Assembly: GCF_052425735.1 (NCBI RefSeq) | Contig: NC_135771.1 | Location: 8,308,001 to 8,372,000 of the forward strand | DNA from: Oculina patagonica | Taxonomy: Eukaryota | Length of the DNA: 64,000 nt | Reading direction: 5' to 3' | Part shown: positions 10,679 through 63,032 of the stretch, piece after piece | How the letters are laid out: each line of letters starts with the position of its first letter | Numbering within the stretch: the stretch's first letter is position 1 | Translations under genes and position numbers: made by a program | The notes under the pieces: model-generated | Database searches by the model: none | Told to the model about the DNA's origin: nothing | The model's input: the letters and a program-made list of their open reading frames with translations, nothing else

Positions 10679-12526
10679 TTATCCAAATGACGTTGATTAG
10701 GACGATGTACTGAATGAAAAAGGCGATGATGGGACCGCTGCAAATGAAAAACCTGAAGAGATCGTTCCAAATGAAGAAGCTTACGAGGTTGTTCCAAATG
10801 AAAGAGGCTTGACTTCTTCCTGGACAAGGCAAAGTTTATCCAGTACTCCTTTGGAGAGCTCTAGTACACAGCCACTGAATGTATCTTTACTTTTTTCAGA
10901 GATCGTTTTCACGGGTATGGTTGTCGCCTGGATCCACTTGTCCTCTGTGGGATCATAGCATTCAACACTCAATTCGCTTTCAATACCGTTCCTTGTGCCA
11001 CCCAGCACATAGAGCTTTTTGTTCAGACATACCATACTGCCATAGACGCGAACAACATTCAAGCTTCCAATAAACTGCCATTCATTTGTAGAAACATTGT
11101 ACATCTCACATGTTGCCGTTACCATTCTCAATTTGTTTGCGTCTCCGGCAACAAAAATCTTTAATTGGGTGGCCACACCAAAAGCACAGCCTCTTTCTTG
11201 TTGCATGTCAGTAATTTCCTCCCATTTGTTTTTAACAGTGTCGAATCGTTCCGCTTTCGTAACGTACTCCGACTCCTCTGGCGGCTTGCCACCAAGAACA
11301 TAAAGATAATTACCAGAGGCAACAACACAAGCCTCTTCTCTACAGCCCTCGTGAGATGACAAAACTGTCTGCCATGAACACAACTCCACATTGTACCTTT
11401 TAATCGTTGATGTGGCGTCTTCAATCTTGACTTCAATGGCATAGATTTCTCCTCTAACGACAGCCACCATGGCAAAATTTGTGGACAAGTCCAAAGTAGC
11501 CCAGCCATTGAAAACGGGATCATATCTCTCTGCCTTACCAATTTAAGGAAAAGTGTACAACTGATCGCAGAATTTTATCATCTGGGTTGTCTGATTTTTC
11601 TCTGACAGCCCGTCTGGCAAACGCTTCCACTCATCTTTCTCTGGGAGATAACAAAAAGTGTATTTCCCTCCACAAGCTACAATGACGCGTGTTTCAATCC
11701 CTTTTCTCGGTGACTGCAGCAGATCGTCGTCTTCACTTGCAAAGGTAGTCAGCTTGATAGCATCTGAGGTCAGCTTCAAACAAGCAAAATTCTCTTGCAC
11801 GAGTTCATTTGTCACGACATAGAGTAAATAGTCACGCGATAGGAAACCCAGCCGAACGTGACGAAATAATTCTTCAAAAAATGCTTTTCGCTCGCTTTTG
11901 TTTTGTTCAACCCACCTTAATATGATTTTAAAAACATCGGCTTCCACTGCAACACAAATCTCATCACTTGAAATCCACCTCTCAACTTCCTTCGCCTCCA
12001 AGTTTAAAAATTCATCCATTTCTGCTACAGAGGCGACGTTTGCGTGGATGAACTTCCTGCTGTTAGCGATAAGTTCGTCACACTGGTATTTCTCAGCAAA
12101 ATAAAAGGTTGAAATGCAGTTTAATTTGGACATCTGTCCTTCAAGAAATCGCCCAGAAATTGTTTTCAATCCCGGAATGAGCAGATAATTCGCTGCGGCT
12201 ATCAGGTCTGCAGCCTGATTCTCCTGAGTGATCTCGACACTTCCTGTGTAGATGAACTCCAAAACATCTTCCATAACAGACCCCGAAATCTCTTCGAACC
12301 GAGCAATTCCTTCTCGATTCTCTTTCATGTCGCTCTGAAGAAGCTTGTGAAAGAACGGGCTTGCTGCGGAGAGCACATTTCTGTGAGCCTTGAACTCTTT
12401 CTCATCTTTCGTCACCAAAGTTACGTCGCATAAATAATCTTGTTTTCGCTGCATGTTGAGCCGCTTTGTCAATTCCACACAAAAAGAAGCTTGTTCTGTA
12501 ACGGAGATAGGCTGTAGATCTTCCAT
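10679..12526 (-). pseudogene. K1: BTB-BACK-Kelch gene with FG-repeat tail, three in-frame stops
   Basis: A 616-codon frame colinear with K8. TAA occurs at 11543-45, 10781-83 and 10697-99 (K8 has CAA at the first and last). One Kelch GG is mutated to GD. The translatable part is a 327-aa BTB-BACK. Confidence 0.9.
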
Positions 12527-12780
12527 GCTCCAAAGAATAGCCGTATTTTCTGAAGATTTAGGTTCTAACCGTCTAGCGTCTTTATATTAGACGGAGAAAA
12601 AGAAGCGAAAGTTCGAGAAGGTATCTCATCACGAGGTCTCCTCGTGATGACGTCATCTCTGGATTAGTTCCCAGTGTCCTCTTCCTCTTCCGCTTTCGAT
12701 TTTGATGATATCTAAGAGGACTCGATAAGACGGTTAAAAAGGAGTCTTTATTTCAAGGTAATAAGGCTATTCTCTGGAGT
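12527..12780. promoter_or_regulatory. Bidirectional promoter/5' region of K1-K2
   Basis: 254 bp between divergent ATGs. Contains a perfect palindrome tcatcacgagg-tct-cctcgtgatga (12626-50), GATGACGTCATC (12646-57) and cttccgctttcgatttt (~12687-703). Confidence 0.7.
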
Positions 12781-14499
12781 ATGGAAGATTTGAAGCCTAT
12801 TTCTGCTGCCGAACAAGCTGCTTTCTGTGTGGAAATGACAAAGCGGCTCAACATGCAGCGAAAACAAGATCATTTATGCGATGTAACTTTGGTGACGAAA
12901 GATGACAAAGAGTTCAAGGCGCATAGAAATGTCCTTTCCGCAGCAAGCCCGTTCTTTCACAAGCTTCTTCAGAGCGACATGAAAGAGAATCGAGAAGGAA
13001 TTGCTCGGTTCGAAGAGATTTCGGGGTCAGTAATGGAAGATGTTTTGGAGTTCATCTACACAGGAAGTGTCGAGATAACTCAAGAGAATTCTGAATATCT
13101 AATCGCTACAGCGAACTATCTGATCATTCCGGGATTGAAAACCGTTTCTGGCCGATTTCTAGAGGGACAAATGACCAAATCAAACTGTATTTCAACCTTT
13201 TATTTCGCTGAGAAATACCAGTGTGACGAGCTTATCGCTAACAGCAGGAAGTTTATCCACGCGAACTTCGCCTCTGTAGCAGAAATGGATGAATTCTTAA
13301 ACTTGGAAGCGAAGGAAGTCGAGAGGTGGATTTCAAATGATGAGATTTCTGTTCCAGACGAGGCAGATGTTTTTAGAATCATATTGAAGTGGGTTGAACA
13401 AGACACGAGCAATCGAAAATCAGTTTTTGAAGAATTGTTTCGTCATGTGCAACTGGTTTTTCTATCGCGTGACTATTTGTTCGATGTCGTGACAAATGAA
13501 CTCGTGCGAGAGAATTCGGTTTGTTTAAAGCTGACCTTAGATGCAATGAAGCTGACTAGCTTTACAAGTGAAAACGAGTTTTCACAATCGCCGAGAAAAG
13601 GGATTGAAACACGCGCCATTGTAGCTTGTGGAGGGAAATACACTTTTTGTTATCTCCCAGAGAAAGATGAGTGGAAGCGTTTGCCAGACGGATTGTTAGA
13701 AAATCGAAGCTGTTATACCCAGATGATAAATTTCCGTGATCAGTTGTACACCTTTCACGGTTGCAAGGCAGAGAGATATGATCCTGTGTTTGATGTTTGG
13801 TCTACTTTGAAGTCAGCACCCAGGGGTGATAACGTGACTGTAGTTAGAGGCGAAATCTATGCTATTGAAGTGGACACGTACAGTAAGAAGAAATCCACTA
13901 TCGCAAGGTACGATGTTGAGCGTTGTTCGTGGCAGACAGTTCTGCAATCTCACGAGGGCTGCAGGCAAGACGCTTGTGTTGTTGCAGCTGGAAATCATCT
14001 GTATGTTCTCGGTGGAACGCCGCCTCAGACAAGGGAATGCGTTGCGAAAGCGGAGAGATTCGACACTGTGGAATACAAATGGGAAGAAATCGTAGACATG
14101 CAACAAGCAAGAGGCGGTGCTTTTGGTGTGGCCACTCAAGGAAAGATTTTTGTTGCCGGAGGAAGGGATAGAGAGAACTGTATGTCGCAAACTTGTGAGA
14201 TGTACAATATCTCATCAAACGAATGGCAGTTTATTGGAAGTTTGAATGTTAGTCGTGTGTGCGGCAGTATGGTGTGTCTGAAGGGAACACTCTATGTGCT
14301 GGGTGGCACAAGGGATAACTGGTCACGAAGTGATTTGAGTGTTGAATGCTATGACCCTACAGAGGACAAATGGATCAAGAAGACAACCATACCAGTGAAA
14401 ACGATCTCGGAAGAAAATAAAGATACATTCACCGGGTGTGCACTGAAACTCTCCAAAGGAGTACTGGACAAAGCTTACGTTGTTAAACTAAACGAATAG
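12781..14499 (+). CDS. K2: Kelch-like BTB-BACK-Kelch protein, 572 aa, intronless
   Basis: BTB signature LCDVTLV..FKAHRNVLSAASPFF..FIYTG, BACK (NCI..AEKY.C..L; WISNDEI), Kelch repeats (YVLGG, ERFD..KW, FVAGG, ECYDP..KW). Confidence 0.95.
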   Translation: MEDLKPISAAEQAAFCVEMTKRLNMQRKQDHLCDVTLVTKDDKEFKAHRNVLSAASPFFHKLLQSDMKENREGIARFEEISGSVMEDVLEFIYTGSVEITQENSEYLIATANYLIIPGLKTVSGRFLEGQMTKSNCISTFYFAEKYQCDELIANSRKFIHANFASVAEMDEFLNLEAKEVERWISNDEISVPDEADVFRIILKWVEQDTSNRKSVFEELFRHVQLVFLSRDYLFDVVTNELVRENSVCLKLTLDAMKLTSFTSENEFSQSPRKGIETRAIVACGGKYTFCYLPEKDEWKRLPDGLLENRSCYTQMINFRDQLYTFHGCKAERYDPVFDVWSTLKSAPRGDNVTVVRGEIYAIEVDTYSKKKSTIARYDVERCSWQTVLQSHEGCRQDACVVAAGNHLYVLGGTPPQTRECVAKAERFDTVEYKWEEIVDMQQARGGAFGVATQGKIFVAGGRDRENCMSQTCEMYNISSNEWQFIGSLNVSRVCGSMVCLKGTLYVLGGTRDNWSRSDLSVECYDPTEDKWIKKTTIPVKTISEENKDTFTGCALKLSKGVLDKAYVVKLNE

Positions 14500-18158: not shown

Positions 18159-18592
18159 CATTCTCGTCCCCAGAGCCGCTAAGTCACGGCCCTCTTAGTC
18201 GATTGAGCCTGGGGCCCGAGGAACAAAGATTTAAATTCTCTTTGTTGAAAATCCAGCCAAGACACATGGAACTCATTACCAGAGATTACAAAATCTTCCA
18301 CATCACAAAATGACTTCATGACAGCTGGCCACTTTTTTCCGGGGGGAGGGGGGGGGGGTGAATAGACGTAGTGAACTTGTATTTTTATATTATTTTAATT
18401 TGTAAGTAGATAACGGAGATAATAATGTTGTTATTATTAAAATTATTTTTTAACATACATTTTTAACATGTTAATTTCACGAAAGATACTGGCTTATTTA
18501 AAAGCTATAGCAACATTCGTGTTTAAATGTCTGTATTTTGTGCCCCAGGCTCAACCAGCTAAGAGGAACAAGCGGCTCTGGGGACGAGAATG
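18159..18592. mobile_element. MITE abutting the K3 promoter
   Basis: 22-bp perfect TIR cattctcgtccccagagccgct with no TSD. The same element lies at 31902-36594 upstream of K5. Confidence 0.8.
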
Positions 18593-18599
18593 GAAACAC

Positions 18600-18724
18600 T
18601 AGTAATGACGTCATCGGTGAATTCGTTCCCTATTGTTTTTTTCCTCTTCCGCTTTCGATTTCGACATCTCAACGAAACGGTTCAAAAGAAGTCATTTCAC
18701 GGAAATAAGGCTATTCTCTGGAGC
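18600..18724 (+). promoter_or_regulatory. K3 5' block: CRE, ETS/IRF-like, GAS-like motifs
   Basis: TGACGTCA at 18606-13; reverse-strand GAAATCGAAAGCGGAA at 18647-62; TTCACGGAA at 18696-704. Confidence 0.55.
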
Positions 18725-20464
18725 ATGGAAGATCTACAGCCTATATCTGCTGCCGAGCAAGCTGCTTTCTGTGTTGAATTGACGAAGCGGCTCAACATGG
18801 AGCGAAAACAAGATCATTTATGCGACATAACTTTGGTGACGAAAGATGACAAAGAGTTCAAGGCTCATAGAAATGTGCTTTCCGCAGCAAGCCCGTTCTT
18901 TCACAAGCTTCTTCAGAGCGACATGAAAGAGAATCGAGAAGGAATTGCTCGGTTCGAAGAGATTTCGGGGTCTGTAATGGAAGATGTTTTGGAGTTCATC
19001 TACACAGGAAGTGTCGAGATCACTCAAGAGAACTCTAAAGATCTTATCGCTACAGGGAACTATCTTCTCATCCCGGGCTTGAAAACAGTTTCTGGGCGAT
19101 TTCTAGAAGGACAGATGACCAAATCAAATTGCATTTCAACCTTTTATTTCGCTGAGAAATACCAGTGTGACGAACTCATCGCTAACAGCAGGAAGTTCAT
19201 CCACGCGAACTTCGCCTCTCAGGTAGCAGAAATGGATGAATTCTTAAACTTGGAAGCAAAGGAAGTCGAGAGGTGGATTTCGGACGACGAGATTTCAGTT
19301 CCAGACGAAATAGATGTTTTTAGAATCATATTAAAGTGGGTTAAACATGATAAGAGCAATCGGAAAGCAGCTTTTGAAGAATTGTTTCGTCACGTGCAAC
19401 TGGTTTTCCTATCGCGTGACTATTTGTTCGATGTCGTGACAAATGAACTCGTGCAAGAGAATTCTCGTTGTTTGCGGCTGACCTCAGATGCAATGAAACT
19501 GACCAGCTTTAAAAATGAAAATGATTTTTCACAATCGCCGAGAAAAGGGATTGAAACACGCGCCATTGTAGCTTGTGGAGGGAAATACACTTTTTGTTAT
19601 CTCCCAGAGAAAGATGAGTGGAAGCGTTTGCCAGACGGATTGTTAGAAAATCGAAGCTGTTATACCCAGATGATAAATTTCCGTGATCAGTTGTACACCT
19701 TTCACTATTGTAAGGCAGAGAGATACGATCCCGTTTTTTATAGCTGGTCTACTTTGAATTCACTGACAGTGTCCAGGGGCTCTGCCATAGTGACTGTAGT
19801 TAGTGGTGAGATCTATGCTATGGAGGTGGACACGTTTCGTACGAAGAAATCCACCATCGCAAGGTATGATGTTGAGCGGTGTTCATGGCAGACAGTTCTG
19901 TCATCTCACGAGGGCTGCAGAGAAGAGGCTTTTGTTGTTGCAGCTGGTAATCACCTTTATGTTTTTGGGGGAAAGCCTCCACAGACACGGGAATACGTTG
20001 CTAAAGTTGAGAGATTCGACACTGTGGAAAACAAATGGGAGAATATCGCAGACATGCAACAAGCAAGAGGCTGTGCTTTTGGTGTGGCCACTCAAGGAAA
20101 GATTTATGTTGCAGGGGGGAAACAGGACGAGGAATATTACGCATCGTGGTTAACAGCATGTGAGATGTACAATATTTCAACCAACGAATGGCAGTCTATT
20201 GCAAGCTTGAATGTTAATCGTGAACATGGCAGTATGGTGTGTCTGAAAGGAACACTTTATGTGCTGGGTGGCGCATGTGACTTTCCTTCACGAAATGATT
20301 TGAGTGTTGAATGCTATGACGCTACAGAGGACAAATGGATCAAGAAGACAACCATACCAGTGAAAACGATCTCCGAAGAAAATAAAGATACATTCACCGG
20401 GTGTGCACTGAAACTCTCCAAAGGAGTACTGGACAAAGCGCGCGTTGTTAAACTAAAAGAATAG
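18725..20464 (+). CDS. K3: Kelch-like BTB-BACK-Kelch protein, 579 aa
   Basis: Intact ORF. Start placed at the MEDLQP codon shared by the paralogs, because the upstream ATG at 18590 lies in a MITE TIR. Confidence 0.93.
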   Translation: MEDLQPISAAEQAAFCVELTKRLNMERKQDHLCDITLVTKDDKEFKAHRNVLSAASPFFHKLLQSDMKENREGIARFEEISGSVMEDVLEFIYTGSVEITQENSKDLIATGNYLLIPGLKTVSGRFLEGQMTKSNCISTFYFAEKYQCDELIANSRKFIHANFASQVAEMDEFLNLEAKEVERWISDDEISVPDEIDVFRIILKWVKHDKSNRKAAFEELFRHVQLVFLSRDYLFDVVTNELVQENSRCLRLTSDAMKLTSFKNENDFSQSPRKGIETRAIVACGGKYTFCYLPEKDEWKRLPDGLLENRSCYTQMINFRDQLYTFHYCKAERYDPVFYSWSTLNSLTVSRGSAIVTVVSGEIYAMEVDTFRTKKSTIARYDVERCSWQTVLSSHEGCREEAFVVAAGNHLYVFGGKPPQTREYVAKVERFDTVENKWENIADMQQARGCAFGVATQGKIYVAGGKQDEEYYASWLTACEMYNISTNEWQSIASLNVNREHGSMVCLKGTLYVLGGACDFPSRNDLSVECYDATEDKWIKKTTIPVKTISEENKDTFTGCALKLSKGVLDKARVVKLKE

Positions 20465-21562
20465 TCCCACAGCTGTTTGGCACGTTACATTTGATGCTCG
20501 GTCACAAGGGAAACAGTTTTCCTCTATGCCAACAGGTTTGCTTGATAAAGAGTCTATCTGTTACCTTCAACACTCAATTTAGCGCTTGAAAGATGAAGCT
20601 GATAGTTGAAGATCTGCTTAATTAAACGTTGCTACCTTGCAATTGGAAAACGATTTTCATACATTTTACAGAAAAGTTCCCTTTCAAGGTTACCATTTTC
20701 TGACAGTAGAATCAAGTACAAGTTACAAACACTTTTCTTTCAATAGTGTCTTCTTACTGACAGATAAATGATATTAAGTTTCCTTCAACTCGAAGTAGCA
20801 GTACGAGTATGAGCGTGACTTTTTTAAACCTTGCGTGTGCCGAGCCCAAGATCGTCACGTGTCACACAATTCTCGTTTCCAGGACCTCCGCGTCTCCTTG
20901 GCAGTGACACTAGAGGATCAAAGGCTCTGGAAACGAGATTGGTTGTTTGAATATCGATTTGAATTAATGGTCCTAATAACTAAACCATGAAGACCTTGAA
21001 GTAAAGATGTCTACACTACCAGGGCAAACGAGGATTATAGGTTTGCGTGACATAGAGAACAAAAAGGGTGGTGGTGGTGGGGGCGGGGGGGGGGGGGCTT
21101 CAAAAATCATGCTGGAAGTTTAATTAACAAAATTCATACAAGAAAATTTGAAAAGTTTTAGTGTTCGTGAGGCCGTAATTTTACCCTTTTACGAAAAGAA
21201 ACTGAAAAGATTGGATTGTAATGTCAGTTAAGTTTAATTTAGTCATATTTTAGCTTTCCAAGATTCTAAACTGTAAGAATCATTGTGCTAAAATAAAGTG
21301 GTTTCATTTGAAATCCAGGGAATAGTGCAGGTTATCCATGTCTCACTATGTTATATACTACATATAAGACTATTGTTTTTCTGGCCCAGGCTGAATATGT
21401 ATTTTTGTAGCCAATCAGAGCGCACAAGAAGAAGAAATACTACTGACTTGATGAAGACGAGACTTGGAAGGTTCCTTTCCCTGGGAAGTGACCAGGCTTA
21501 TCGCTTTCGTCACAAAACCTTCTTAGCAAAGTACATAAAAATAAGAAAATCTACATCAGGGC

Positions 21563-21762
21563 TTCAGGATGGGATGCTAGTCCATCGCAGGATAGCCCTC
21601 AGATTCGCCGGTACCCATGTATACAACTGGGTGGAGACAGGCACTATAAGAGTAAAGCGTCTTGCCTAAAAACACAACACAGTGACCGCAGACATGACTC
21701 GTACCCAGACCGCTCGATCCGGGGTCCAGTGCACTAACCATAAGAGCTCATTAGGCCACCGC
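21563..21762 (-). mobile_element. tRNA-derived SINE
   Basis: Plus strand gggatgctagtccatcgcagg...ggtacccat...cgctcgatccggggtccagtgcactaaccat, same family as the other copies. Confidence 0.7.
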
Positions 21763-22668
21763 ACCTACGGTTGAATGCTTTGCACGCGAACAATCTTTGA
21801 GAATTACTTCAAGTTTTAAATTTACGGAATAGCACGTCTGTTTCTACTGACCTGAAACTTGCCTATCGTGTTGTAGCTTCGAATTCTTTAATGTTATCTG
21901 CCAGCCTGACTGTCCGTATGTGTACTGAACGTGGGACAATAAAAGCGAAAGAAAAATTACAGAGCGAATCAAGGTCCCTACAACCAGTAGCTTCGATGCA
22001 ACCCTTCAAGAGTTACGTCCTTGGGACAAGTTTCCTTTCCCCTCATACCCAGATGGGGGACTACCATATAAAAGTGACAGGGTGTTCGTTGGAAATTGTA
22101 AAAGGACCCCCTAAAAGGTACAAAAACTTGCTTGGTGGGTGTATCTTAAATTCTTTTTCATCTCTAAAAGGTCCTCTAAAAGTGATCAGTATGAAACCGC
22201 CGGAAGCCGTGTTCTTTTTTCTTCAAATGTCATAGAAAGAAAACACCGCAATATTCCAAAAATAAGACCTGCACTTATATTTGCAAGTAGATGTCCCTTT
22301 CAGGTGGGCTTATATTTGGGAAGCGGAGAGAGGAGGGGGGGGGGGGGGTATCTTCGGATGGAAATTTGCGTTTTAAAAATCTTTGGGTTTCTAGTTGGAC
22401 GGGAAACTGTTTGAAATTTTTTTGGTGCATTTAAGAAAACCACATCGCCAAAATCTCTAAAACTAGCGATGTAAAACCCAAAACAAGCCCTACAGCCATA
22501 AACAGGTCAACAATACAGGTAGGTCCACTCGTGATGAGTGATGACGTCAACTCTGAATTCGTTCCCGGTGTCCTCTTCCTCTTCCGCTTTCGATTTTTGA
22601 CGACATCTCTGAACGACACGCTTCAAAAGTAGTCTCTATTTCACGGTAATAAGGCTATTCTCTGGAGT

Positions 22669-24366
22669 ATGGAAGATCTGCAGCCTATCACTGCTGCCGA
22701 ACAAGCTTCATTCTGTGTGGAATTGACAAAGCGGCTCAACATGCAGCGAAAACAAGATCATTTATGCGACATAACTTTGGTGACGAAAGATGACAAAGAG
22801 TTCAAGGCTCATAGAAATGTGCTTTCCGCAGCAAGCCCGTTCTTTCACAAGCTTCTTCAGAGTGACATGAAAGAGAATCGTGAAGGAATCGCTCGGTTCG
22901 AAGAGATTTCGGGGTCTGTAATGGAAGATGTTTTGGAGTTCATTTACACAGGAAGTGTCGAGATAACTCAAGAGAATTCTGAAGATCTAATCGCTACAGC
23001 GAACTATCTGATCATTCCGGGCTTGAAAACCGTTTCTGGCCGATTTCTAGAAGGACAAATGACCAAATCAAACTGCATTTCAACCTTTTATTTCGCTGAG
23101 AAATACCAGTGTGACAAACTTATCGCTAACAGCAAGAAGTTCATCCACGCGAACTTCGCCTCTGTAGCAGAAATGGATGAATTCTTAAACTTGGAAGCAA
23201 AGGAAGTTGAGAGATGGATTTCAAGCGATGAGATTTCTGTTGCAGTCGAAGCCGATGTTTTGAAAATCATTTTCAAGTGGATCGAACAAAACAAAAGCGA
23301 GCGAAAGGCAACGTTTGAAGAATTGTTTCGTCACGTGCGGCTGGTTTTCCTGTCGCGTGACTATTTGCTCGATGTCGTGACAAATGAACTTGTGCGAGAG
23401 AATTTCGGTTGTTTGAAGCTGGTTTCAGATGCTATTAAGCTGACTAGCTTTACAAGTGAAAATGATCTTCGGCAGTCACCGAGAAAAGGGCTTGAAACAC
23501 GCGCCATTGTAGCTTGTGGAGGGAAATACACTTTCTGTTATCTCCCCGAGAAAGATGAGTGGAAGCGTTTGCCAGACGGGCTGTCAGAGAATCGGGACTA
23601 TGAAACCAAGATGATAAACTTCCACGATAAGTTGTACACCTTTCACCGTTATAAGGCAGAGAGATGCGATCCCGTATTTAATGGCTGGTCTACTTTGGAC
23701 TTAAGTTTGTCCGCCCCTTCTACTATGGTGACTGTCGTTAAAGGAGAAATCTATGCTGTTGAGGTCAACACATCAACGAATAAATCCACTATTCAAAGGT
23801 ACAATGTAGAGTTGTGTTCATGGCAGACAGTTCTCTCATCTCACGAGGGCTGCAGAGAAGAGGCTTGAGTTGTTGCAGCTGGTAATCACCTTTATATTCT
23901 CGGAGGCAAGCGGCCACAGGCAGGATACGTTACGAAAAGTGAGAGATTCGACACTGTGGAAAACAAATGGGAGGAAATCGCAGACATGCAAAAAGAAAAA
24001 AGCTACACTTTTGGTGTGGCCACTCAAGGAAACATTTTTGTTGCCGGTGGGTGGTCGAGAACATGTGAGATGTACAATATTTTAAAAAACGAATGGCACT
24101 CTATTGCAAGCTTGAATGTTAAGCATGTATGGGGTAGTATGGTGTGTCTGAAGGGAACACTCTATGCCCTGGGTGGTGTAAGGAATGTCACCTATTTCCC
24201 AAGTGAGTTAACTGTTGAATGCTACGACTCTACAAAGGACAAGTGGATCAAGAAAACAACCATACCAGTGAAAATGATTTCCAAAGAAAGTAATAATACA
24301 TTTACTGGCTGCGTACTGAAACTCTCCAAAGGAGTACTGGACAAACTTGACGTTGTTAAAGAATAG
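22669..24366 (+). pseudogene. K4: BTB-BACK-Kelch gene with a single in-frame TGA
   Basis: 566-codon frame with TGA at 23866-68 where most paralogs have TGT (Cys). The frame continues unbroken to the normal stop. CRE at 22542-49. Confidence 0.85.
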
Positions 24367-30515: not shown

Positions 30516-30693
30516 CCTTCCACGATAAGCAACGTAATTCCAGGGCGGGAGAGGGCTGGTGGCAACCCTGCTTACAGATTCCTTAGCTTCCCTCTACACT
30601 TTTTTCGCTATGGCTGATAGAAATTCATTTACAACACCTTTTTTCATTGAAGGATTTCATTTCAGCATGTAATACATCTTGCACGGTAAGTTA

Positions 30694-44022: not shown

Positions 44023-45723
44023 ATGGAAGATCTGCAGCCTATCTCTGCTGCCGAACAAGCTTCATTCTGCGTGGAATTGACAAAGCGGCTCAACATGCAG
44101 CGAAAACAAGATCATTTATGCGACGTAACTTTGGTGACAAAAGATGACAAAGAGTTCAAGGCTCATAGAAATGTGCTTTCCGCAGCAAGCCCGTTCTTTC
44201 ACAAGCTTCTTCAGAGCGACATGAAAGAGAATCGAGAAGGAATTGCTCGGTTCGAAGAGGTTTCGGGGTCTGTAATGGAAGATGTTTTGGAGTTCATCTA
44301 CACAGGAAGTGTCGAGATCACTCAAGAGAACTCTAAAGATTTAATCGCTACAGCGAACTATCTTCTCATCCCGGGCTTGAAAACCGTTTCTGGCCGATTT
44401 CTAGAAGGACAGATGACCAAATCAAACTGCATTTCAACCTTTTATTTCGCTGAGAAATACCAGTGTGACGAACTCGTCGCTAACAGCAGGAAGTTTATCC
44501 ACGCGAACTTCGTCTCTGTAGCAGAAATGAATGAATTCTTAAACTTGGAAGCGAAGGAAGTCGAGAGGTGGATTTCAAGCGATGAGATTTCTGTTGCATT
44601 CGAAGAAGATGTTTTTCGAATCATATCAAAGTGGGTTGAACAAAACAAAAGCGAGCGTAAGGCAGCTTTTGAAGAATTGTTTCGTCACGTACGGCTGGTT
44701 CTCCTATCGCGTGACTATTTGCTCGATGTCGTGACAAATGAACTCGTGCGTGAGAATTCTGTTTGCTTGAGGCTGATCTCAGATTCTATAAAACTGACTA
44801 CCTTTGCTAGTGAAGATGATGATCTGCCGCTGTCACCGAGAAAAGGGCTTGAAACTCGCGTCATTGTAGCTTGTGGAGGGAAATATACTTTTTGTTATCT
44901 CCCGGAGAAAAATGAGTGGAAGCGTTTGCCAGACGGGCTGTCAGGGAAAAATCAGAAAACCCAGATGAGGAAATTCCGCGATCAGTTGTACACCTTTCCT
45001 AAATATGGTAAGGCAGAGAGATACGATCCCTTTTTTAATGGTTGGTCTACTTTGGACCTGTACACTAGTTCTGCTGTGACTGTCGTTAAAGGAGAAATCT
45101 ATGATATTGAAGTCAACACATCAACGAAAAAGACCACTATCAAGAGATACAATACGTGGTCGTGTTCGTGGCAGACAGTTCTCTCATCTCACGAGGGCTG
45201 CAGGGATGACTCTTGTGTTGTTGCGGCTGGCAATCATCTGTATGTTCTCGGTGGGATGCCGCCACAGCAATCGAAATACGTTACGAAAGCAGAGAGATTC
45301 GACGTAGTGGAAAACAAATGGCAGGAAATTGGAAACATGCAACAAGAAAGAGGTTATGCTTTTGGTGTGGCCACTCAAGGAAAGATTTTTGTTGCCGGGG
45401 GGAAGCCTTTGACTAGAACATGTGAGATGTACAATATTTCAACAAACGAATGGCAGTCTATTGCAAGCTTGAATGTGTATCGTGGATGTGCCAGTATGGT
45501 GTGTCTGAAGGGAACACTCTATGTGCTGGGTGGCACAAATGACTGTTCGCAAAGTGAATTGAGTGTTGAATGCTATGACCTTACTGTTAAAGAGGACAAA
45601 TGGGTCAAGAAAACAACCATACCAGTGAAAGTGATCTCCAAGCAAAGTAAGGATACATTCTCTGGCTGTGTACTGAAGCTCTCTAAAGGAGTACTGGACA
45701 AAGTTTCCGTTGTTAAAGAATAG
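44023..45723 (+). CDS. K7: Kelch-like BTB-BACK-Kelch protein, 566 aa
   Basis: Intact ORF. CRE at 43927-34 and TTCACGGAA at 43994-44002 lie upstream. Confidence 0.95.
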   Translation: MEDLQPISAAEQASFCVELTKRLNMQRKQDHLCDVTLVTKDDKEFKAHRNVLSAASPFFHKLLQSDMKENREGIARFEEVSGSVMEDVLEFIYTGSVEITQENSKDLIATANYLLIPGLKTVSGRFLEGQMTKSNCISTFYFAEKYQCDELVANSRKFIHANFVSVAEMNEFLNLEAKEVERWISSDEISVAFEEDVFRIISKWVEQNKSERKAAFEELFRHVRLVLLSRDYLLDVVTNELVRENSVCLRLISDSIKLTTFASEDDDLPLSPRKGLETRVIVACGGKYTFCYLPEKNEWKRLPDGLSGKNQKTQMRKFRDQLYTFPKYGKAERYDPFFNGWSTLDLYTSSAVTVVKGEIYDIEVNTSTKKTTIKRYNTWSCSWQTVLSSHEGCRDDSCVVAAGNHLYVLGGMPPQQSKYVTKAERFDVVENKWQEIGNMQQERGYAFGVATQGKIFVAGGKPLTRTCEMYNISTNEWQSIASLNVYRGCASMVCLKGTLYVLGGTNDCSQSELSVECYDLTVKEDKWVKKTTIPVKVISKQSKDTFSGCVLKLSKGVLDKVSVVKE

Positions 45724-51229: not shown

Positions 51230-53080
51230 TTATCCAAATGACGTTGATTGGGACGCTGTACTAAATGAAAAAGGTGACGATGGGGGCGCTCCAAATGAAA
51301 AACCTGATGAAGCCACTCCAAATGTAATAGGCGTTAACGGGGTCGCTTTAACTGCAATAGGCGATACTACTTCCTGGACAAGGCAAAGTCTGTCCAGTAC
51401 TCCTTTGGAGAGCTTCAGTACACAGCCACTGAATGAATCTTTACTTTCTTTGGAGATCGTTTTCACTGGTATGGTTGTCGCCTGGATCCACTTGTCCTCT
51501 GTAGGGTCATAGCATTCAACACTCAATTCGCTTTGGGTACAGTTTCTTGTGCCACCCAGCACAAAGAGCTTTTTGTTCAGACACACCATACTACCATAGA
51601 CGCGAATAACATTTAAGCTTCCAATAAACTGCCATTCGTTTGTAGAAACATTGTACATCTCACATGTTGTCGTTACCTTTCTCAATTTGTTTCCACCTCC
51701 AGCAACAAAAATCTTTCCTTGAGTGGCCACACCAAAAGCACCGCCTCTCTCTTGTTGCATGTCAGTAATTTCTTCCCATTTGTTTTCCACAGTGTCGAAT
51801 CTTTCCGCTTTCGCAACATACTCCGATTCCTGCGACGGCTTGCCACCGAGAACATACAAATAATTACCAGCCGCAACAACACAAGAGTCTTGCCTGCAGC
51901 CCTCCTGAGATAACAGAACTGTTTGCCATGAACACAGCTCCACATTGTACCTTTTGATGGTGGATTTTTTCGTTGATGTATCGACTTCAATAGCATAGAT
52001 TTCTCCTTTAACGACGGACACCACAGCAGAATTTGTGGGCAAGTCCAAAGTAGACCAACCATTGAAAACGGGATCGTATCTCTCTGCCTTACCAGTTTGA
52101 GGGAAGGTGTGCAACTGATCACGGAATTTTATCATCTGGGTTTTCTGATTTTTCTCTGACAGCCCGTCTGGCAAACGCTTCCACTCATCTTTCTCTGGGA
52201 AATAACAAAAAGTGTATTTGCCACCACAAGCTACAACGACGTGTGTTTCAAGCCCTTTTCTCGGTGACTGCGGCAGATCATTATCTTCACTTGCAAAGGT
52301 ATTCAGCTTTATAGCATCTAAGGCCAGCTTTAAACAAGCAAAATTCTCTTGCACGATTTCATTTGTCACGACATAGAGTAAATAGTCACGCGATAAGAAA
52401 CCAAGCCGAACGTGACGAAATAATTCTTCCAAAAATGCTTTTCGCTCGCTTTTGTTTTGTTCAACCCACCTTAATATGATTTTAAAAACATCGGCTTCGA
52501 CTGCAACAGAAATCTCATCACTTGAAATCCACCTCTCAACTTCCTTCGCTTCCAAGTTTAAGAATTCATCCATTTCTGCTACAGAGGCGATGTTCGCGTG
52601 GATGAACTTCCTGCTGTTAGCGATAAGTTCGTCACACTGGTATTTCTCAGCGAAATAAAAGGTTGAAATGCAGTTTAATTTGGTCATCTGTCCTTCAAGA
52701 AATCGCCCAGAAACTGTTTTCAATCCCGGAATGAGCAGATAATTCGCCGTGGCTATCAGGTCTGCAGCCTGATTCTCCTGAGTGATCTCGACACTTCCTG
52801 TGTAGATGAACTCCAAAACATCTTCCATTACAGACCCCGAAATCTCTTCGAACCGAGCAATTCCTTCTCGATTCTCTTTCATGTCGCTCTGAAGAAGCTT
52901 GTGAAAGAACGGGCTTGCTGCGGAAAGCACATTTCTATGAGCCTTGAACTCTTTCTCATCTTTCGTCACCAAAGTTACGTCGCATAAATGATCTTGTTTT
53001 CGCTGCATGTTGAGCCGCTTTGTCAATTCCACACAAAAAGAAGCTTGTTCTGTAACGAAGATAGGCTGTAGATCTTCCAT
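51230..53080 (-). CDS. K8: Kelch-like BTB-BACK-Kelch protein with FG-repeat C-terminal tail, 616 aa
   Basis: Intact ORF ending ..ITFGVASSGFSFGAPPSSPFSFSTASQSTSFG. Confidence 0.95.
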   Translation of the reverse strand: MEDLQPIFVTEQASFCVELTKRLNMQRKQDHLCDVTLVTKDEKEFKAHRNVLSAASPFFHKLLQSDMKENREGIARFEEISGSVMEDVLEFIYTGSVEITQENQAADLIATANYLLIPGLKTVSGRFLEGQMTKLNCISTFYFAEKYQCDELIANSRKFIHANIASVAEMDEFLNLEAKEVERWISSDEISVAVEADVFKIILRWVEQNKSERKAFLEELFRHVRLGFLSRDYLLYVVTNEIVQENFACLKLALDAIKLNTFASEDNDLPQSPRKGLETHVVVACGGKYTFCYFPEKDEWKRLPDGLSEKNQKTQMIKFRDQLHTFPQTGKAERYDPVFNGWSTLDLPTNSAVVSVVKGEIYAIEVDTSTKKSTIKRYNVELCSWQTVLLSQEGCRQDSCVVAAGNYLYVLGGKPSQESEYVAKAERFDTVENKWEEITDMQQERGGAFGVATQGKIFVAGGGNKLRKVTTTCEMYNVSTNEWQFIGSLNVIRVYGSMVCLNKKLFVLGGTRNCTQSELSVECYDPTEDKWIQATTIPVKTISKESKDSFSGCVLKLSKGVLDRLCLVQEVVSPIAVKATPLTPITFGVASSGFSFGAPPSSPFSFSTASQSTSFG

Positions 53081-53335
53081 GCTCCAAAGAATAGCCGTAT
53101 TTTCTGAAAATTTAGGTTCTAACCGTCTAGCGTCTTTATATTAGACGGAGAAAAAGAAGCGAAAGTTCGAGAAGAGAAGGTATCTCATCAGGAGGTCTCC
53201 TCGTGATGACGTCATCTCTGGATTAGTTCCCAGTGTCCTCTTCTTCTTCCGCTTTCGATTTTGATGATATCTAAGCGAGACGGTTCAAAAGGAGTCTTTA
53301 TTTTAAGGTAATAAGGCTATTCGATTCTCTGGAGT
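53081..53335. promoter_or_regulatory. Bidirectional promoter/5' region of K8-K9
   Basis: Near-identical to 12527-12780. TGACGTCA at 53207-14; the palindrome has one mismatch. Confidence 0.7.
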
Positions 53336-55051
53336 ATGGAAGATTTGAAGCCTATTTCTGCTGCCGAACAAGCTGCTTTCTGTGTGGAAATGACAAAGCG
53401 ACTCAACATGCAGCGAAAACAAGATCATTTATGCGACGTAACTTTGGTGACGAAAGATGACAAAGAGTTCAAGGCTCACAGAAATGTGCTTTCCGCAGCA
53501 AGCCCGTTCTTTCACAAGCTTCTTCAGAGCGACATGAAAGAGAATCGAGAAGGAATAGTGCGGTTCGAAGAGATTTCGGGGTCTGTAATGGAAGATGTTT
53601 TGCAGTTCATCTACACAGGAAGTGTCGAGATCACTCAGGAGAACTCTAAAGATCTAATTGCTACAGGGAACTATCTTCTTCTACCGGGCTTGAAAACAGT
53701 TTCCGGACGATTTCTAGAAGGACAGATGACCAAATCAAACTGCATTTCAACCTTTTATTTCGCTGAGAAATACCAGTGTGACGAACTCATCGCTAACAGT
53801 AGGAAGTTCATCCACGCGAACTTCGCCTCTGTTGCAGAAATGGATGAATTCTTAAACTTGGAAGCGAAGGAAGTTGAGAGGTGGATTTCAAGCGACGAGA
53901 TTTCAGTTCCAGACGAAATAGATGTTTTTAGAATCATATTAACATGGATTGAACAAGACAAGAGCAATCGGAAAGCAGCTTTTGAAGAATTGTTTCGTCA
54001 CGTGCAACTGGTTTTTCTATCGCGTGACTATTTGATAGATGTCGTGACAAATGAATTCGTGCGAGAGAATTCGGATTGTTTAAAGCTGGCCTTAGATGCT
54101 ATAAAGCTGACTAGCTTTACAAGTGAAAATGATCGTCCGCAGACACCGAGAAAAGGGCTTGAAACACATGTCATTGTAGCTTGTGGAGGGAAATACACTT
54201 TTTGTTATCTCCCGGAGAAAGATGAGTGGAAGCGTTTGGCAAACGGGTTGTCAGAGGATATTTTCTTTAAGACTTCGATGATAAACTTTCGCGATCAAAT
54301 GTACACCTTTCACTATGACAAGGCAGAGAGATACGATCCCGTTTTTGATGGTTGGTCTACTTTGAATTTAGTGCCCAGGGGTTCTGCCATGGTGACTGTA
54401 GTTAGAGGAGAAATTCATGTTATTGAGGTGAACACATCAACGAAAAAATCCACTATTCAAAGATACAATGTTGAGCGGTGTTCATGGCAGACAGTTCAGT
54501 CATCTCACGAGGGCTGCAGGGTAGAGAGTTGTGTTGTTGCTTCTGGTAATCATGTGTATGTTCTTGGTGGTAAGCCGCCACAGGAATCTGAGGACGTTGT
54601 GAAAGCAGAGAGATTCGACACTGTGGAAAACAAATGGGAGGAAATCGCAGACATGCAAGAAGCGAGAGCCAGGGCTTTTGGTGTGGCAACTGATGGAACG
54701 ATTTTTGTTGCCGGAGGAAGACACGGATGGGGAACTACATTGAAAACATGTGAAATGTACAATGTTTCTACAAACGAGTGGCAGTTGATTGCAAGCTTGA
54801 ATGTTAACCGTGAATGGGGCAGTATGGTGTGTGTGAAGGGAACCCTCTATGTGCTTGGTGGCACAAGGGACTATTCACGAAATGATTTGAGTGTTGAATG
54901 CTATGACCCTACAGAGGACAAATGGATCAAGAGGACAACCATACCAGTGAAAACGATCTCCGAAAAAAATGAGGATACATTCACCGGGTGTGCACTGAAA
55001 CTGTCCAAAGGGGTACTGGACAAAGCTCGCGTTGTTAAACTAAAAGAATAG
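53336..55051 (+). CDS. K9: Kelch-like BTB-BACK-Kelch protein, 571 aa
   Basis: Intact ORF. The N-terminus MEDLKP..VEMTK is shared with K2. Confidence 0.95.
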   Translation: MEDLKPISAAEQAAFCVEMTKRLNMQRKQDHLCDVTLVTKDDKEFKAHRNVLSAASPFFHKLLQSDMKENREGIVRFEEISGSVMEDVLQFIYTGSVEITQENSKDLIATGNYLLLPGLKTVSGRFLEGQMTKSNCISTFYFAEKYQCDELIANSRKFIHANFASVAEMDEFLNLEAKEVERWISSDEISVPDEIDVFRIILTWIEQDKSNRKAAFEELFRHVQLVFLSRDYLIDVVTNEFVRENSDCLKLALDAIKLTSFTSENDRPQTPRKGLETHVIVACGGKYTFCYLPEKDEWKRLANGLSEDIFFKTSMINFRDQMYTFHYDKAERYDPVFDGWSTLNLVPRGSAMVTVVRGEIHVIEVNTSTKKSTIQRYNVERCSWQTVQSSHEGCRVESCVVASGNHVYVLGGKPPQESEDVVKAERFDTVENKWEEIADMQEARARAFGVATDGTIFVAGGRHGWGTTLKTCEMYNVSTNEWQLIASLNVNREWGSMVCVKGTLYVLGGTRDYSRNDLSVECYDPTEDKWIKRTTIPVKTISEKNEDTFTGCALKLSKGVLDKARVVKLKE

Positions 55052-56032: not shown

Positions 56033-57084
56033 TCCCTTATGCCTACAGGTTTGCTTAATAGAGTCTGTTTGTTAGCTTTAGATAAGGGCTTGAAAGAGAA
56101 AGCTGACAGTTGAAGATCTACTGTAAACGCTTCTATGTTGGTTTAACGATTTAAATACATTTTACAGCAAAGTTTCATTCCAAGTTTACCATTTTCCGAC
56201 ATTAATTTACAGTCGAATGTATGAATATATTTATGGCATCGTTTCAAGTGTGTTTTACATCATTCAAATTCACCCAAGATCTTTTTCCTTTGATTTAAAA
56301 GATGTTAAATTCCCATCCGATACAATTAACAAACACTATTCTTTCGAAAGTGTCTACTTACTGACAGATTGATGATATTAATAGCAGTATATGTGTGAGC
56401 GTGACTTTTTTAAACCTAGCGCGTGTTCCGTGAAGAAGATCGTCACGTGTCACACAATTCTCGTTTCCAGAACCCCCGCATCTCCTCCACATCTCCTTGA
56501 TTGCTTGTTTGAATATCGATTTGAATGGTCCTAATAACTGAGCCACGAAGTCTTAGAAGTAAATAAGTGTTCTAGTACACTACCAAAGCAAAATGATCGT
56601 AGGTTTGCGTGACAAAGAGAACAAAAAAGGGGGGACTATAAAAATCAAGCGTGAAGTTATAAGATAATACACGCAAGATGTTTTAAATGGCGTAAACATT
56701 TAATTAACAAAACCGTGCGAGAAAATATTACAGTTTTAGCTTTCGTGGCACCGTAATTTTATCCTTTTATGAAAGAGAAACTTATAAGGTTGGATTGTAA
56801 TGTTAGTTAAGTGTAGTTTAGTCATATTTTAGCTTTCCAAGATTCTAAACTGTAAGAATCATCGTGTTTAAATAAAGTGGTTTCATTTAAAATCTAGTGG
56901 ATAGTGTAGGTTATCATGTATTTTAGTAGCCAATCAGAGCAAACAAGAAACACTAGTAACTTGATGAAGTCGCGACTTGGAAGGATTATTCGCCTGGGAA
57001 GTTACAAGCCTAACGCTTTCGTCACAAAATTAAACCTGCTTAGCAAAGTTAATAAAAGTATTAAGAAAGTCTGCATCGGTTGTC

Positions 57085-57295
57085 TCAAAACGCCGGAGCT
57101 TATCCTGACTTCAGGATCGGATGCTAGTCCATCGCAGGGTTATCCCCAGATTCGCCGGTACCCCACCTGGGTAGAAACAGGCACTATGAGAGTTAAGTAT
57201 CTTGCCCAAGAACACAACTCAGTGACCCCAGGCTGGACTCGAACCCGGACCGCTCGATCCCGAGTCCAGTGCACCAGCCATTAGACCAGCGCATC
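57085..57295 (-). mobile_element. tRNA-derived SINE
   Basis: Same family; ggactcgaacccggaccgctcgatcc on the plus strand. Confidence 0.7.
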
Positions 57296-58669
57296 TTCCA
57301 TGCTTGTCCCTGGGACAAATTTCCTCCTCCTCCCCCCGGTGGGGGACTACCATGTAAAAGTGACGAAGGTTTTCGTCGGAAATTTTGAAAGGACCCCCTA
57401 AAAGGTACAAACAAGAGAGGATATCCTCTCTTGGTACAAAAACTTGCTTGGTGGGTGTATCTTAAATTCATTTTCATCTCTAAAAGTTATCAATATGAAA
57501 CCGCCGGAAGTCGTGTTCCTTTTTCTTCATAAATGCCATAGAAAGAAAGCACCGTGATATTCCAAAAATAAGACCTGCACTTGTATTTGCACATAAATGT
57601 ACTTTTAAGGTGGGCTTATATTTGGGAGGGGCTAAAACACAGGAGAGAGGAGGCCGGGGGGGGGGGGGGGGGGTGGTGGTGGTGGTATTTTCGGAGGGAA
57701 ATTTGCGTTTTAAAAATCTTTGGGTTTCTATTTGGACGGGAAACTGTCTGAAAAATTTTTTGGTGCATTTAAGAATACCACATGGCCAAAATCTCTAAAA
57801 AAAAACTATGCAAAACCCATAACGGACTTGAAACAAACATTACAAGTCTCTGAACAACGAAAGATATAAAAGAAGCTCGAGCTCTACAATAGTTGGGACC
57901 TATAGTCAGAAGAGTTATATGTCAGATGTTTCGTTATAAAAGAGATATTACTAATTATAAGCCCATGAGCTTAGCATATTTCCCTAATTTTGCCGTACCA
58001 AAAAAAAAAAGAAAAAGAAAATAAAACACTGAGAAATAAAACAATAGATCCACTCGTGATGACGTCAACGTTAAATTCGTTCCCAGTGTTCTCTCCCTTG
58101 GCCTCTTCCGCTTTCGATTTGGACATCTGAGCGAGACGGTTTAAAAGCAGTCTATATTTCACGGTATTAAGGTTATTCTCTGGAGTATGGAAGATCTGCA
58201 ACCTATCTCTGCTGCCGAGCAAGTGTCATTCTGTGTGGAATTGACAAAGCGGCTCAACATGCAGCGAAAACAAGATCATTTATAAAGCTGAGTAGCTGTA
58301 CGAGTGATAATGATGACCTGCCGCAGTCGCCGAGAAAAGGGCTTGAAACACATGTCATTGTAGCTTGTGGAGGGAAATACACTTTCTGTTATCTCCCAGA
58401 GAAAGATGAGTGGAAGCGTTTGGCAGACGGGTTGTCAGAGAATCGAAACTACCAAACCAAGATGATAAACTTCCACGATAAGTTGTACACCTTTCACCGT
58501 GGTAAGGCAGAAAGATACGATCCCGTATTTAATGGCTGGTCTACTTTGGACTTAAGTTTGCCCACCTCTTCTGCTATGGTAACTGTCGTCAAAGGAGTAA
58601 TCTATGCTATTGAAGTCGACACACGCACCCAAAAATCTACTATTCTAAGATACAATGTTGAACAGTGTT

Positions 58670-61007: not shown

Positions 61008-61577
61008 CCCTTAACATGCTTAGCGCGGATTATTCCGGGATTTGGAGGAATGGCCATTCTGCCACTTATGACGTCACCAATTTACACGTCAGCAGATTTT
61101 TGTGATTTGCATCTTATAGAGCTGGGATAGATCTTTCCACAGGACTGTCCATCTTCAATATTGACTGAATTCCGACAGAGCTAATCGAAAAAAACGCGAT
61201 CAGTTTTTGGTGTAAAATTGGTGCTAAAACAGGCCAAAATACCCGTACTTGATCATGATCTCCTTTCCAGGGTTTTCCATTGATTCAGATCAAAACTTTT
61301 CAGGCCAGTAGAAGGGGTGCACAGAGTAAAAGATAGAGAGAATAAGAAAGCAGAGAAAAACGAAAAGGAAAGGAGCAAAGAAAAAATCGGAACGGTTCAG
61401 CAAAAAAAAAAAAAAAAAAAATTGTACATTTTTACATGGAAATTTCATCAAAATCTTCCTGCATTGTCAGAAAGTGCATTTTTAGCAAATTTAGAGAACT
61501 TTTGGACCGTAGAGCCAAGAAAATCGATAAACGGTTAAAGAAACGCGTTTTTAGGAATAATTTCAGCATATTAAAGG
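61008..61577. mobile_element. piggyBac-type MITE inside K10
   Basis: TTAA duplicated; ends cccttaacatgct / agcatattaaagg. Confidence 0.85.
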
Positions 61578-63032
61578 TTAAATGTGTGTCGTGCGTGGGC
61601 CAGTATGGTGTGTCTGAAGGGTACACTCTATGTGCTGGGTGGCACAAATAACAGTTCACCAAGTGAATTGATTCTTGAATGCTGTGACCCTACAGAGGAC
61701 AAGTGGATCCAGAAGACAACCATACCAGTGAAAACGATCTCCGAAGAAAGTAAAGATACATTCACCGGGTGTGCACTGAAACTCTCCAAAGGAGTGCTGG
61801 ACAAAGCTCACATTGTTAAACTAAAAGAATAGTCCCGCAGCTGTTTGGAACGGTTATATTTGATCACTTCGATCTGAAAAATAATTGCAGATTGTGAGGA
61901 AAATAGGAAAACGAGAGCAGACTGGGAAGAGACGGAAGAGGAAATGAATCCAGTCGTTCATAACTTGACCTGTTGGCTTGCGTTTTTGTGTTTTCCACAC
62001 AATAATTGTTTAACACTTTACATTTGATGCTTGGTCTCAAGGAAACGGTTGTCGTCTATGCAGAGTCTGTTTATTAGCTTCAGTTTAGCGCTTGACTGAT
62101 GAAGCTGACAGTTGAAGATCTGTAAACGCTACTTCGTTGGTTTAACGATTTTCATACATTTTACAGCAAAGATTCCTTTCAAGTTTACCATTTTTCGACA
62201 TAAATTTACAGTAGAATGAATGAACATATTTACCGCGTCGTTTCGAGTATGTTTTACATCATTCAAATTCACTCAAAATGATTTAAGAGATGTTAAATAA
62301 TTTCCCATAAAATTGACAAACACTATTATTTCGAAAGTGTCTACTCACCGACAGATTGGTCAAGTGACCTTCAGCTCGAAGTAGCAGTAGGACTATTGTA
62401 TGAGCGTGATTCTTTTTAAACCTAGCGCGCGTGCCCAACATCATCACGTGTCACACTTTTCTCGTTCCCAGAACCTCCGGGTCTACTTGTCAGCGGCAGG
62501 GAGGGTCAAGGGCTCTGGAAACGAGACTGGTTTTTAAATAGCGATTTATCTCCCCTAATTACATAACCACGAACATATAGAAGTGAATAACTGTTACAGT
62601 ACACTGCCAAACCAAACAACGATTGTATGCTTGCGTGAGAAAAAAATAGCAAAAAATCGAGGCTATAAAAATCACGCAAGAAGTTAGAAAATTAAGTTAG
62701 AAGCTAAAATGTCACGTAAGATGTTAAAAATTGCACGAGAAGTTAACAAAAATCGTGTGAGAAGTTATAAAGTTCTAATATGTATAGCGGAGCTGTAGTG
62801 TTTGTTTTTCATGTAAGACAAACTTACAACAAAAGTTGTAAGCCAGAACTTTCATGGCGAACAGTTGGTAGCTGCGAATTTTCGCCATTGTATTATTTTT
62901 GTTGTTGGATTGTTAGGTATAGTTTAGCTTAGTCATATTTAAGCTTATCAAGATTCTTAACTGAAAGAAACACCATGTTAAAATAAAGTAATTGGATTTG
63001 AAACCAAGCGAATCGTCCAGGAAATTCATATA

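Follow-up and report, generated by a model that had tools for sequence, protein, structure and literature searches.

A coral tandem array of intronless KLHL-type Cullin-3 adaptors with a hypervariable predicted ligand face

TRIM5 and the finTRIM proteins are E3 ubiquitin ligases with variable loops in their B30.2 domains, and a viral ligand of TRIM5 is known. Among cullin adaptors, Thomas reportedly described the F-box and MATH-BTB families in 2006 as adaptively evolving. The KLHL adaptors of Cullin-3 (Cul3), including KEAP1, KLHL2, KLHL3, KLHL12, KLHL20 and KLHL22, have a conserved ligand face on a Kelch propeller. Here we analysed a 64,000-nucleotide window from Oculina patagonica (assembly GCA_052425735.1, chromosome CM126648.1; all coordinates are window positions), which carries a tandem array of ten BTB-BACK-Kelch loci. 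Bleaching caused by Vibrio has classically been studied in O. patagonica and, to our knowledge, the means by which corals recognize intracellular partners and enemies (algal symbionts, Vibrio, viruses) are largely unknown.

The coral genes share with the KLHL adaptors their domain order, fold, six blades, phi-x-E motif and a ligand face made of the loops that join strand B to C and strand D to A (B-C and D-A loops). They differ in being intronless, in tandem and present in many copies per genome, in their low identity to those adaptors (25-27%) and in a ligand face that is hypervariable, whereas that of the KLHL adaptors is conserved. With the F-box and MATH-BTB families of nematodes and plants they have in common a lineage-specific tandem expansion, a conserved cullin side and a variable substrate side, birth-and-death evolution with pseudogenes, and the fastest sites in the substrate-binding domain. 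The coral module, however, is a Kelch propeller on BTB-BACK rather than MATH or FTH/FBA, its host is a cnidarian, and its excess of nonsynonymous (dN) over synonymous (dS) change depends on the model. Its BTB-BACK-Kelch architecture places the coral family outside the F-box and MATH-BTB families, which it resembles in evolutionary mode. By analogy they also resemble TRIM5 and finTRIM, as a germline-encoded E3 family in which the catalytic or docking part is constant and the recognition domain concentrates its sequence and length variation in surface loops; the RING-B-box-coiled-coil-B30.2 architecture is unrelated, and TRIM5 has a known viral ligand where the coral ligands are putative.

We consider the array to be part of a coral-lineage tandem expansion of intronless KLHL-type Cul3 adaptors whose ligand faces were diversified by selection for diverse or changing ligands, a reading to which we assign a probability of about 0.55. 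It would extend the pattern of a constant cullin end and a variable substrate end, seen in nematodes and plants, to BTB-Kelch proteins and to a cnidarian. The array also offers a defined candidate set for coral intracellular recognition, consisting of transcribed, multi-copy ubiquitin-ligase adaptors with a different ligand face on each copy. No description of a coral BTB-Kelch expansion was found by a full-text literature search or by a term search of the main texts of coral genome papers, and KCTD7 was the sole match to BTB in a coral selection paper.

The array and its predicted adaptor fold

Using K2 as the reference copy, we located family members by tblastn against the window together with the list of open reading frames (ORFs). 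Ten loci were found between 10.7 and 61.8 kb, bearing out the ten intronless paralogues in 51 kb that an earlier, sequence-only reading of the window had proposed. Eight are full-length BTB-BACK-Kelch copies and two (K6 and K10) are relics; six of the ten (K2, K3, K5, K7, K8 and K9) are intact single-ORF genes of 566-616 residues. Every full-length copy forms one unbroken reading frame with BTB, BACK and Kelch domains (Pfam), and the coding regions are intronless. The start codons of K1 and K2, and likewise those of K8 and K9, lie head-to-head about 255 bp apart. The loci and the two shared promoters are:

10781-12526, minus strand: K1, full-length BTB-BACK-Kelch of the K1/K8 type with one premature stop
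12527-12780, between the genes: divergent promoter shared by the head-to-head pair K1/K2, 254 bp
12781-14499, plus strand: K2, intact, 572 aa; BTB 23-128, BACK 136-237, six-bladed Kelch propeller about 276-558
18725-20464, plus strand: K3, intact, 579 aa
22669-24366, plus strand: K4, full length, one premature stop, no frameshift
36702-38411, plus strand: K5, intact, 569 aa
39731-39888, plus strand: K6, relic of about 160 bp covering only aa 516-567 of the family (tblastn)
44023-45723, plus strand: K7, intact, 566 aa; proximal promoter block partly deleted
51230-53080, minus strand: K8, intact, 616 aa, K1/K8 type
53081-53335, between the genes: divergent promoter shared by the head-to-head pair K8/K9, palindrome at 53206-53215
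53336-55051, plus strand: K9, intact, 571 aa
58187-61829, plus strand: K10, dead copy in four pieces (aa 1-32, 256-383, 379-491 and 488-572)

By Pfam, K2 contains a BTB domain (PF00651, E=5e-29, aa 23-128), a BACK domain, 3-box region included (PF07707, E=3e-26, aa 136-237), and Kelch repeats, and its BTB-BACK part aligns with the KLHL3 and KLHL11 BTB-BACK structures (E=5e-40). An AlphaFold2 (AF2) model of K2, built from 49 homologues (mean pLDDT 90.6), is helical over residues 136-260 and arranges 24 strands into six blades of four strands each, with the C-terminal strand 551-558 closing the propeller. Foldseek matched the model to the CUL3-KLHL22 complex (TM 0.65) and to the Kelch domains of KEAP1, KLHL12 and KLHL3 (TMt 0.79-0.84, about 0.82 for KEAP1). 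M67-K68-E69 aligns with M83-S84-E85 of KLHL3, the phi-x-E contact to Cul3; the triplet is invariant in all eight full-length copies, and across the 49 homologues conservation reaches 90% or more at both M67 and E69. Mutation of this contact in KLHL3 abolishes Cul3 binding (PMC3616122). By domain content, fold and the invariant phi-x-E, which cover every feature that sequence can test, the proteins are KLHL-type adaptors with predicted Cul3 binding, in keeping with the identity first proposed for them.

Among reviewed proteins the nearest are KLHL2, KLHL3, KLHL12, KLHL20 and KEAP1, with identities of no more than 25-27%, and these matches point to no particular vertebrate orthologue. NCBI labels the relatives inconsistently, as KLHL24 in Oculina and as KLHL2 or KLHL3 in Stylophora. 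KLHL24 is not within the top 30 reviewed matches, in a comparison by best match rather than by a formal phylogeny with vertebrate KLHLs; given this and the low identity, 'KLHL24' is a best-hit name. An Atlas search returned generic KLHL clusters only.

Four of the ten loci had been called disabled, and these prove to be K1, K4, K6 and K10. In K1 the frame is unshifted and one stop interrupts it (TAA at 11543-11545, aa 328), and the same holds for K4 (TGA at 23866-23868, aa 400, where six of the seven other copies read TGT and K3 reads TTT). At the position of the K1 stop, CAA is read in one RNA contig that matches K1 at 98.3% identity, over a stretch where K1 and K8 themselves agree at only 87.5%. 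The stop is thus missing from at least one transcribed K1-like sequence and is probably not fixed. K10, by comparison, lacks aa 33-255 and with them BTB-BACK, and holds insertions of roughly 2 and 0.56 kb.

A nearly constant BTB domain and a hypervariable predicted ligand face

The sequence-only reading had contrasted a near-invariant BTB with loops that vary radically beside the Kelch GG motifs, and both substitution rates and entropy bear this out. The ratio of dN to dS (omega, Nei-Gojobori) is 0.11 in the BTB (dN 0.027, dS 0.258), 0.25 in the BACK and about 0.4 in the Kelch domain. Because pairwise dS among the window copies is 0.19-0.46, the near-invariant BTB reflects purifying selection on fairly old paralogues and not the youth of the copies. 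Gross gene conversion was rejected as its cause: trees of the N-terminal half and of the Kelch half give the same main groups, namely (K1,K8), K2/K3/K9 and (K5,K7), and differ in weakly supported details only, while dS in the BTB is 0.26.

We classed the Kelch loops by strand topology, using the DSSP string of the model and a HMMER alignment to KEAP1, so that the classes describe topology and not a measured surface position. The GG doublet ends strand B; the post-GG loops of the sequence-only reading are therefore B-C loops and its 'LNV' loop is a D-A loop, and all the loop strings quoted in it were found in the alignment of the copies. The HMMER alignment gives the following equivalences (chain numbering is human numbering plus 7):

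K2 R418: KEAP1 R483
K2 445: KEAP1 S508
K2 462-469: KEAP1 Y525-N532
K2 493: KEAP1 S555
K2 510: KEAP1 Y572

Most of these KEAP1 residues are substrate-pocket residues (PMC6891428). The alignment of the B-C and D-A loops with this pocket agrees with the proposal that the variable loops form the substrate-binding face.

Entropy was computed over 117 relatives from many coral assemblies, with these means:

B-C and D-A loops: 1.58 bits
Strands: 0.58 bits
A-B and C-D loops: 0.68 bits
BTB: 0.48 bits

The excess in the B-C and D-A loops is highly significant (Mann-Whitney p=8e-14), and 27 of the 31 positions above 2.5 bits fall within them. Length varies as well, with B-C loops of 7-17, 6-28 and 6-22 residues in blades 4, 5 and 6, respectively, whereas the A-B loops, and all but two of the C-D loops, are fixed in length. 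Nearly all of the substitution and length variation is thus carried by the B-C and D-A loops, above all those of blades 4-6. The reading frame is kept through every loop insertion or deletion, and so is the scaffold around the loops, which like the BTB-BACK half is under purifying selection. We regard as robust the hypervariability itself, its placement on the predicted ligand face and the lack of purifying constraint at these positions.

All variation described here lies between germline paralogues, and the term 'CDR-like' that had been applied to the loops holds as an analogy only. We saw no sign of somatic diversification in RNA contigs, which are assembled consensus sequences, 95-100% like the germline, and cannot reveal rare somatic variants.

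Turnover, gene conversion and selection

The family extends beyond the window, with at least seven further loci at 8.37-8.41 Mb of the same Oculina chromosome and at least eight loci within 70 kb of a second coral species (ENA assembly ERZ25067872). A tree built from 123 proteins unites the Oculina and ERZ25067872 copies, without exception, in one clade with three subclades common to both species. Inside each subclade the copies cluster by species (the K2 type has three Oculina copies against six from ERZ25067872), and thus no one-to-one orthologues were found between the two. In every case where both members were assignable to a type, the head-to-head pair consists of one K1-type and one K2-type gene. 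The cases are, for the window, K1/K2 and K8/K9; for Oculina beyond it, P0022/P0018; and for ERZ25067872, L006_12090/P0024. The same composition in both species makes the pair an old unit that has been duplicated independently since. Copies have died by nonsense mutation (K1, K4), by deletion and insertion (K10) and by reduction to a relic (K6). Pseudogenes, relics, species-specific clades and the missing one-to-one orthologues together uphold the birth-and-death pattern first proposed for the array.

Conversion between copies was assessed by permutation of identical runs at polymorphic sites. The strongest tract joins K2 and K3 over aa 267-325 (global p<5e-4), followed by K8-L001 (p=0.0055), K5-L001 (p=0.0125) and K3-L001 (p=0.03). 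A K2-K5 tract at aa 444-469, across the blade-5 loop and including the shared RDREN loop, is marginal (p=0.06). In the array of the second species, reverse-transcriptase ORFs (RVT_1) lie between Kelch genes (L002 12067-13614 and L005 19658-21037), showing that retroelements populate its spacers.

Selection was then analysed with site models in our own GY94-type code, with F3x4 frequencies and IQ-TREE topologies. With dS held constant, the eight window copies gave 2dlnL (twice the gain in log-likelihood) of 57 for M1a/M2a, 72 for M7/M8 and 58 for M8a/M8. A set of 18 sequences, comprising the eight window copies, three further Oculina genes and seven from ERZ25067872, gave 212 and placed 6% of codons in a class with omega 4.0. 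This signal was 0 in BTB-BACK; it remained at 184 with the 16 intact genes only, at 66 without columns within two of a gap, and at 19, 11, 24 and 36 for the blade segments, each on its own tree. A bug in the codon code was checked as its source by simulations under the M1a null, with and without tip-shuffled segments, which yielded at most 3.1 in only six replicates each. The selected propeller residues fall in the B-C and D-A loops in 16 of 17 cases, with none in A-B or C-D loops and none in aa 1-275 (Fisher p=1.4e-6).

One further codon stood apart from the propeller. K2 aa 566 (14476-14478), in the tail after the closing strand, reached P(omega>1) of 0.99-1.0 in both constant-dS sets; by strand topology, this tail leaves the propeller opposite the ligand face.

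We also fitted a dual-rate grid to the 18-sequence set, in which the synonymous rate (alpha) and the nonsynonymous rate (beta) vary separately and branch lengths are fixed at their M0 estimates. A hypervariable set of 28 codons was defined independently, from 91 proteins outside the Oculina/ERZ clade. The fitted rates were:

BTB/BACK: alpha 0.75, beta 0.2
Strands with A-B and C-D loops: alpha 1.0, beta 0.35
Other B-C and D-A loop sites: alpha 1.5, beta 0.75
Hypervariable set (28 codons): alpha 1.5, beta 3.0

For the hypervariable set beta/alpha is thus 2.0, and the test against alpha=beta yields a likelihood ratio of 10.4 (p=0.0012); over its 18 ungapped columns the value is 1.33 (p=0.25). Of the 17 sites that exceed P>0.9 in a FUBAR-like empirical Bayes analysis with dual rates, 13 lie in B-C or D-A loops (p=2e-5). 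The synonymous rate itself rises about twofold, from 0.75 in BTB/BACK to 1.5-2 in the B-C and D-A loops. Mosaic ancestry from conversion tracts would explain this rise, which fits gene conversion that either homogenized the conserved parts or imported diverged loop segments.

Several observations weigh against selection as the source of the loop diversity. The median omega for the 110 loop codons taken together is 0.56, and at the 28 hypervariable codons pN equals pS (0.43 each, Nei-Gojobori). At the nine hypervariable codons with no gap within two columns, beta and alpha are both 2.0, so that their ratio is 1.0 (95% support region 0.67-1.33). When alpha is free to vary in a non-parametric mixture, 2dlnL rises by about 300 and the evidence for beta>alpha shrinks from 248 to 20, or to 11-16 when gapped or gap-adjacent columns are left out. 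The codon code is our own, its grid is coarse and recombination is handled only crudely. Finally, the comparisons are between paralogues only, and consequently do not distinguish old subfunctionalization from an ongoing arms race. Of the prediction that sites with dN/dS>1 would cluster on the top face, the clustering of fast sites therefore holds under both kinds of model and the ratio reaches 2.0, but that excess is model-dependent and falls to 1.0 at the best-aligned codons. A true excess of dN over dS in the loops is likely but not secure. More generally, standard constant-dS site models greatly overstate positive selection in conversion-prone arrays.

Selection for diverse or changing ligands would account for the array as follows. 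The ancestral unit is a head-to-head pair around a promoter of about 250 bp, with repeated, independent duplications in at least two species. Each paralogue would dimerize through its BTB and dock Cul3-Rbx1 through the phi-x-E motif and the 3-box, and with a different binding face on each paralogue the array would amount to a set of ubiquitin ligases with differing specificities. The likeliest driver would be selection for diverse or changing ligands such as viral, bacterial, algal-symbiont or mobile-element proteins, which could be either ubiquitination targets or antagonists to be escaped, and exchange of segments between paralogues may add to the diversity. A more specific proposal, which we hold tentatively, is that of a germline intracellular recognition repertoire built on Kelch propellers, its loops diversified by selection and short-tract exchange, that would tag viral, bacterial, symbiont or mobile-element proteins and form a cnidarian counterpart of TRIM5/finTRIM and of nematode F-box/MATH-BTB proteins. 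The foreign targets put forward in the sequence-only reading, like an immune function, are inference.

Alternatively, the paralogues may have divided host substrates among themselves, possibly members of another expanded host family, with loops that diverged after duplication, are now stable and owe nothing to foreign conflict. Every selection test above compares paralogues with a dS of 0.14-0.46, the three subclades and the head-to-head pair were in place before the two species separated, the youngest pairs have a loop omega of 0.5-1.1 and so not clearly above 1, and the conserved promoter with its CRE-type palindrome in all copies (see below) suggests ordinary co-regulation. Such a stable division of labour nevertheless sits poorly with the absence of one-to-one orthologues inside the subclades (three K2-type copies against six), with the turnover indicated by pseudogenes, relics and the lack of the K1 stop in the 98.3% identical contig, and with the hypervariability of the same positions across many coral assemblies. 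We judge endogenous subfunctionalization without conflict to be rather unlikely.

It is also doubtful, in our estimate, that the loops are simply unconstrained surface on genes of mosaic ancestry, with rates inflated by conversion and uncertain alignment and with no adaptive diversification at all. The raised loop alpha (1.5-2 against 0.75 in BTB/BACK), a beta/alpha near 1 at well-aligned hypervariable codons, the significant conversion tracts and a 2dlnL of only 11-20 in the dual-rate mixture are what such an account would predict. Against it, beta/alpha is 2.0 (p=0.0012) over the whole of an independently defined hypervariable set, the blade-wise tests remain significant on their own trees, and misalignment drives omega towards 1 and not beyond. 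Scaffold and frame are preserved through all loop indels, and in characterized KLHL proteins such as KEAP1 the aligned face is the ligand pocket (PMC6891428), so that one would hardly expect six genes that are intact and transcribed to leave this face without constraint.

An origin from endogenized BTB-Kelch genes of a large DNA virus is very improbable: the genes are intronless and multicopy, like those of poxviruses (for example vaccinia A55), whose products reportedly bind Cul3 (10.1101/461806), and one Atlas neighbour cluster comes from Nucleocytoviricota, but the Atlas neighbours all score equally and are mostly animal KLHLs, G+C is even at 0.38-0.42 along the window, the intergenic ORFs that were scanned gave no Pfam match of significance, viral or otherwise, and the array, the gene-pair unit and the subclades are common by descent to coral species. 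The poxviral genes also serve a virus in subverting the host ligase, whereas the coral genes are chromosomal.

Transcription, promoters and minor features

RNA-library contigs from three studies cover the coding regions of K1 and K2 at 95-100% identity, run on into about 800 bp of 3' flank in two of four runs, and drop to near-zero depth over the promoter gap at 12446-12833. The family genes are transcribed, which removes silence as an objection to the sequence-only reading.

A proximal promoter of about 150 bp is common to all full-length genes and K10. In 14 of 19 promoters, those of three of the seven ERZ25067872 genes among them, it contains the palindrome ATGACGTCAT at 96-144 bp upstream of the start. 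The CRE-type palindrome ATGACGTCA(T), which precedes nearly every copy and occurs in the second species too, has ten matches against 0.39 expected by chance; since the copies share it by descent, this enrichment alone is no proof of function. An IRF/ISRE reading of the promoter, based on a neighbouring TTTC motif, was set aside as weak, the strict TTTCNNTTTC core being found in five of 19 promoters as against 14 of 19 for the CRE-type palindrome. K10 keeps promoter motifs at 58059 and 58109. Positions in the window are:

12647-12656: ATGACGTCAT in the K1/K2 promoter
12691-12702: CGCTTTCGATTT in the K1/K2 promoter
12647-12656, 18605-18614, 22541-22549, 43926-43934, 53206-53215 and 58059-58067: CRE-type palindrome sites

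Smaller features concern single genes. Upstream of K3, an in-frame ATG at 18590 would add 45 residues (18590-18724) and overlaps the conserved promoter palindrome; lying inside the promoter, it is probably not the start codon. In blade 5 of K1, GD replaces the conserved GG doublet (11094-11096), which, besides the stop codon, may mark early decay of this allele. In K8, the ancestral stop TAG reads TCG, adding a tail of 45 residues rich in Ser, Phe and Gly (51230-51375), and C-terminal extensions of differing length occur on K1-type copies (K8, L003 10001-11740 and L006 10040-11884).

The spacers contain repeats. Short ORFs sharing a peptide motif lie downstream of several copies (21298-21669, 30178-30528, 41056-41478 and 56916-57284); the first and the last two of these had no meaningful Pfam match, and all are probably relics of a repeat element. 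Downstream of K2, the segment 15356-16500 reaches RNA-contig depths of hundreds to thousands with many loose ends and looks like an abundantly transcribed dispersed repeat. Upstream of the array, 1243-3194 is a tandem repeat of at least seven units of about 175 nt that are 61-88% identical.

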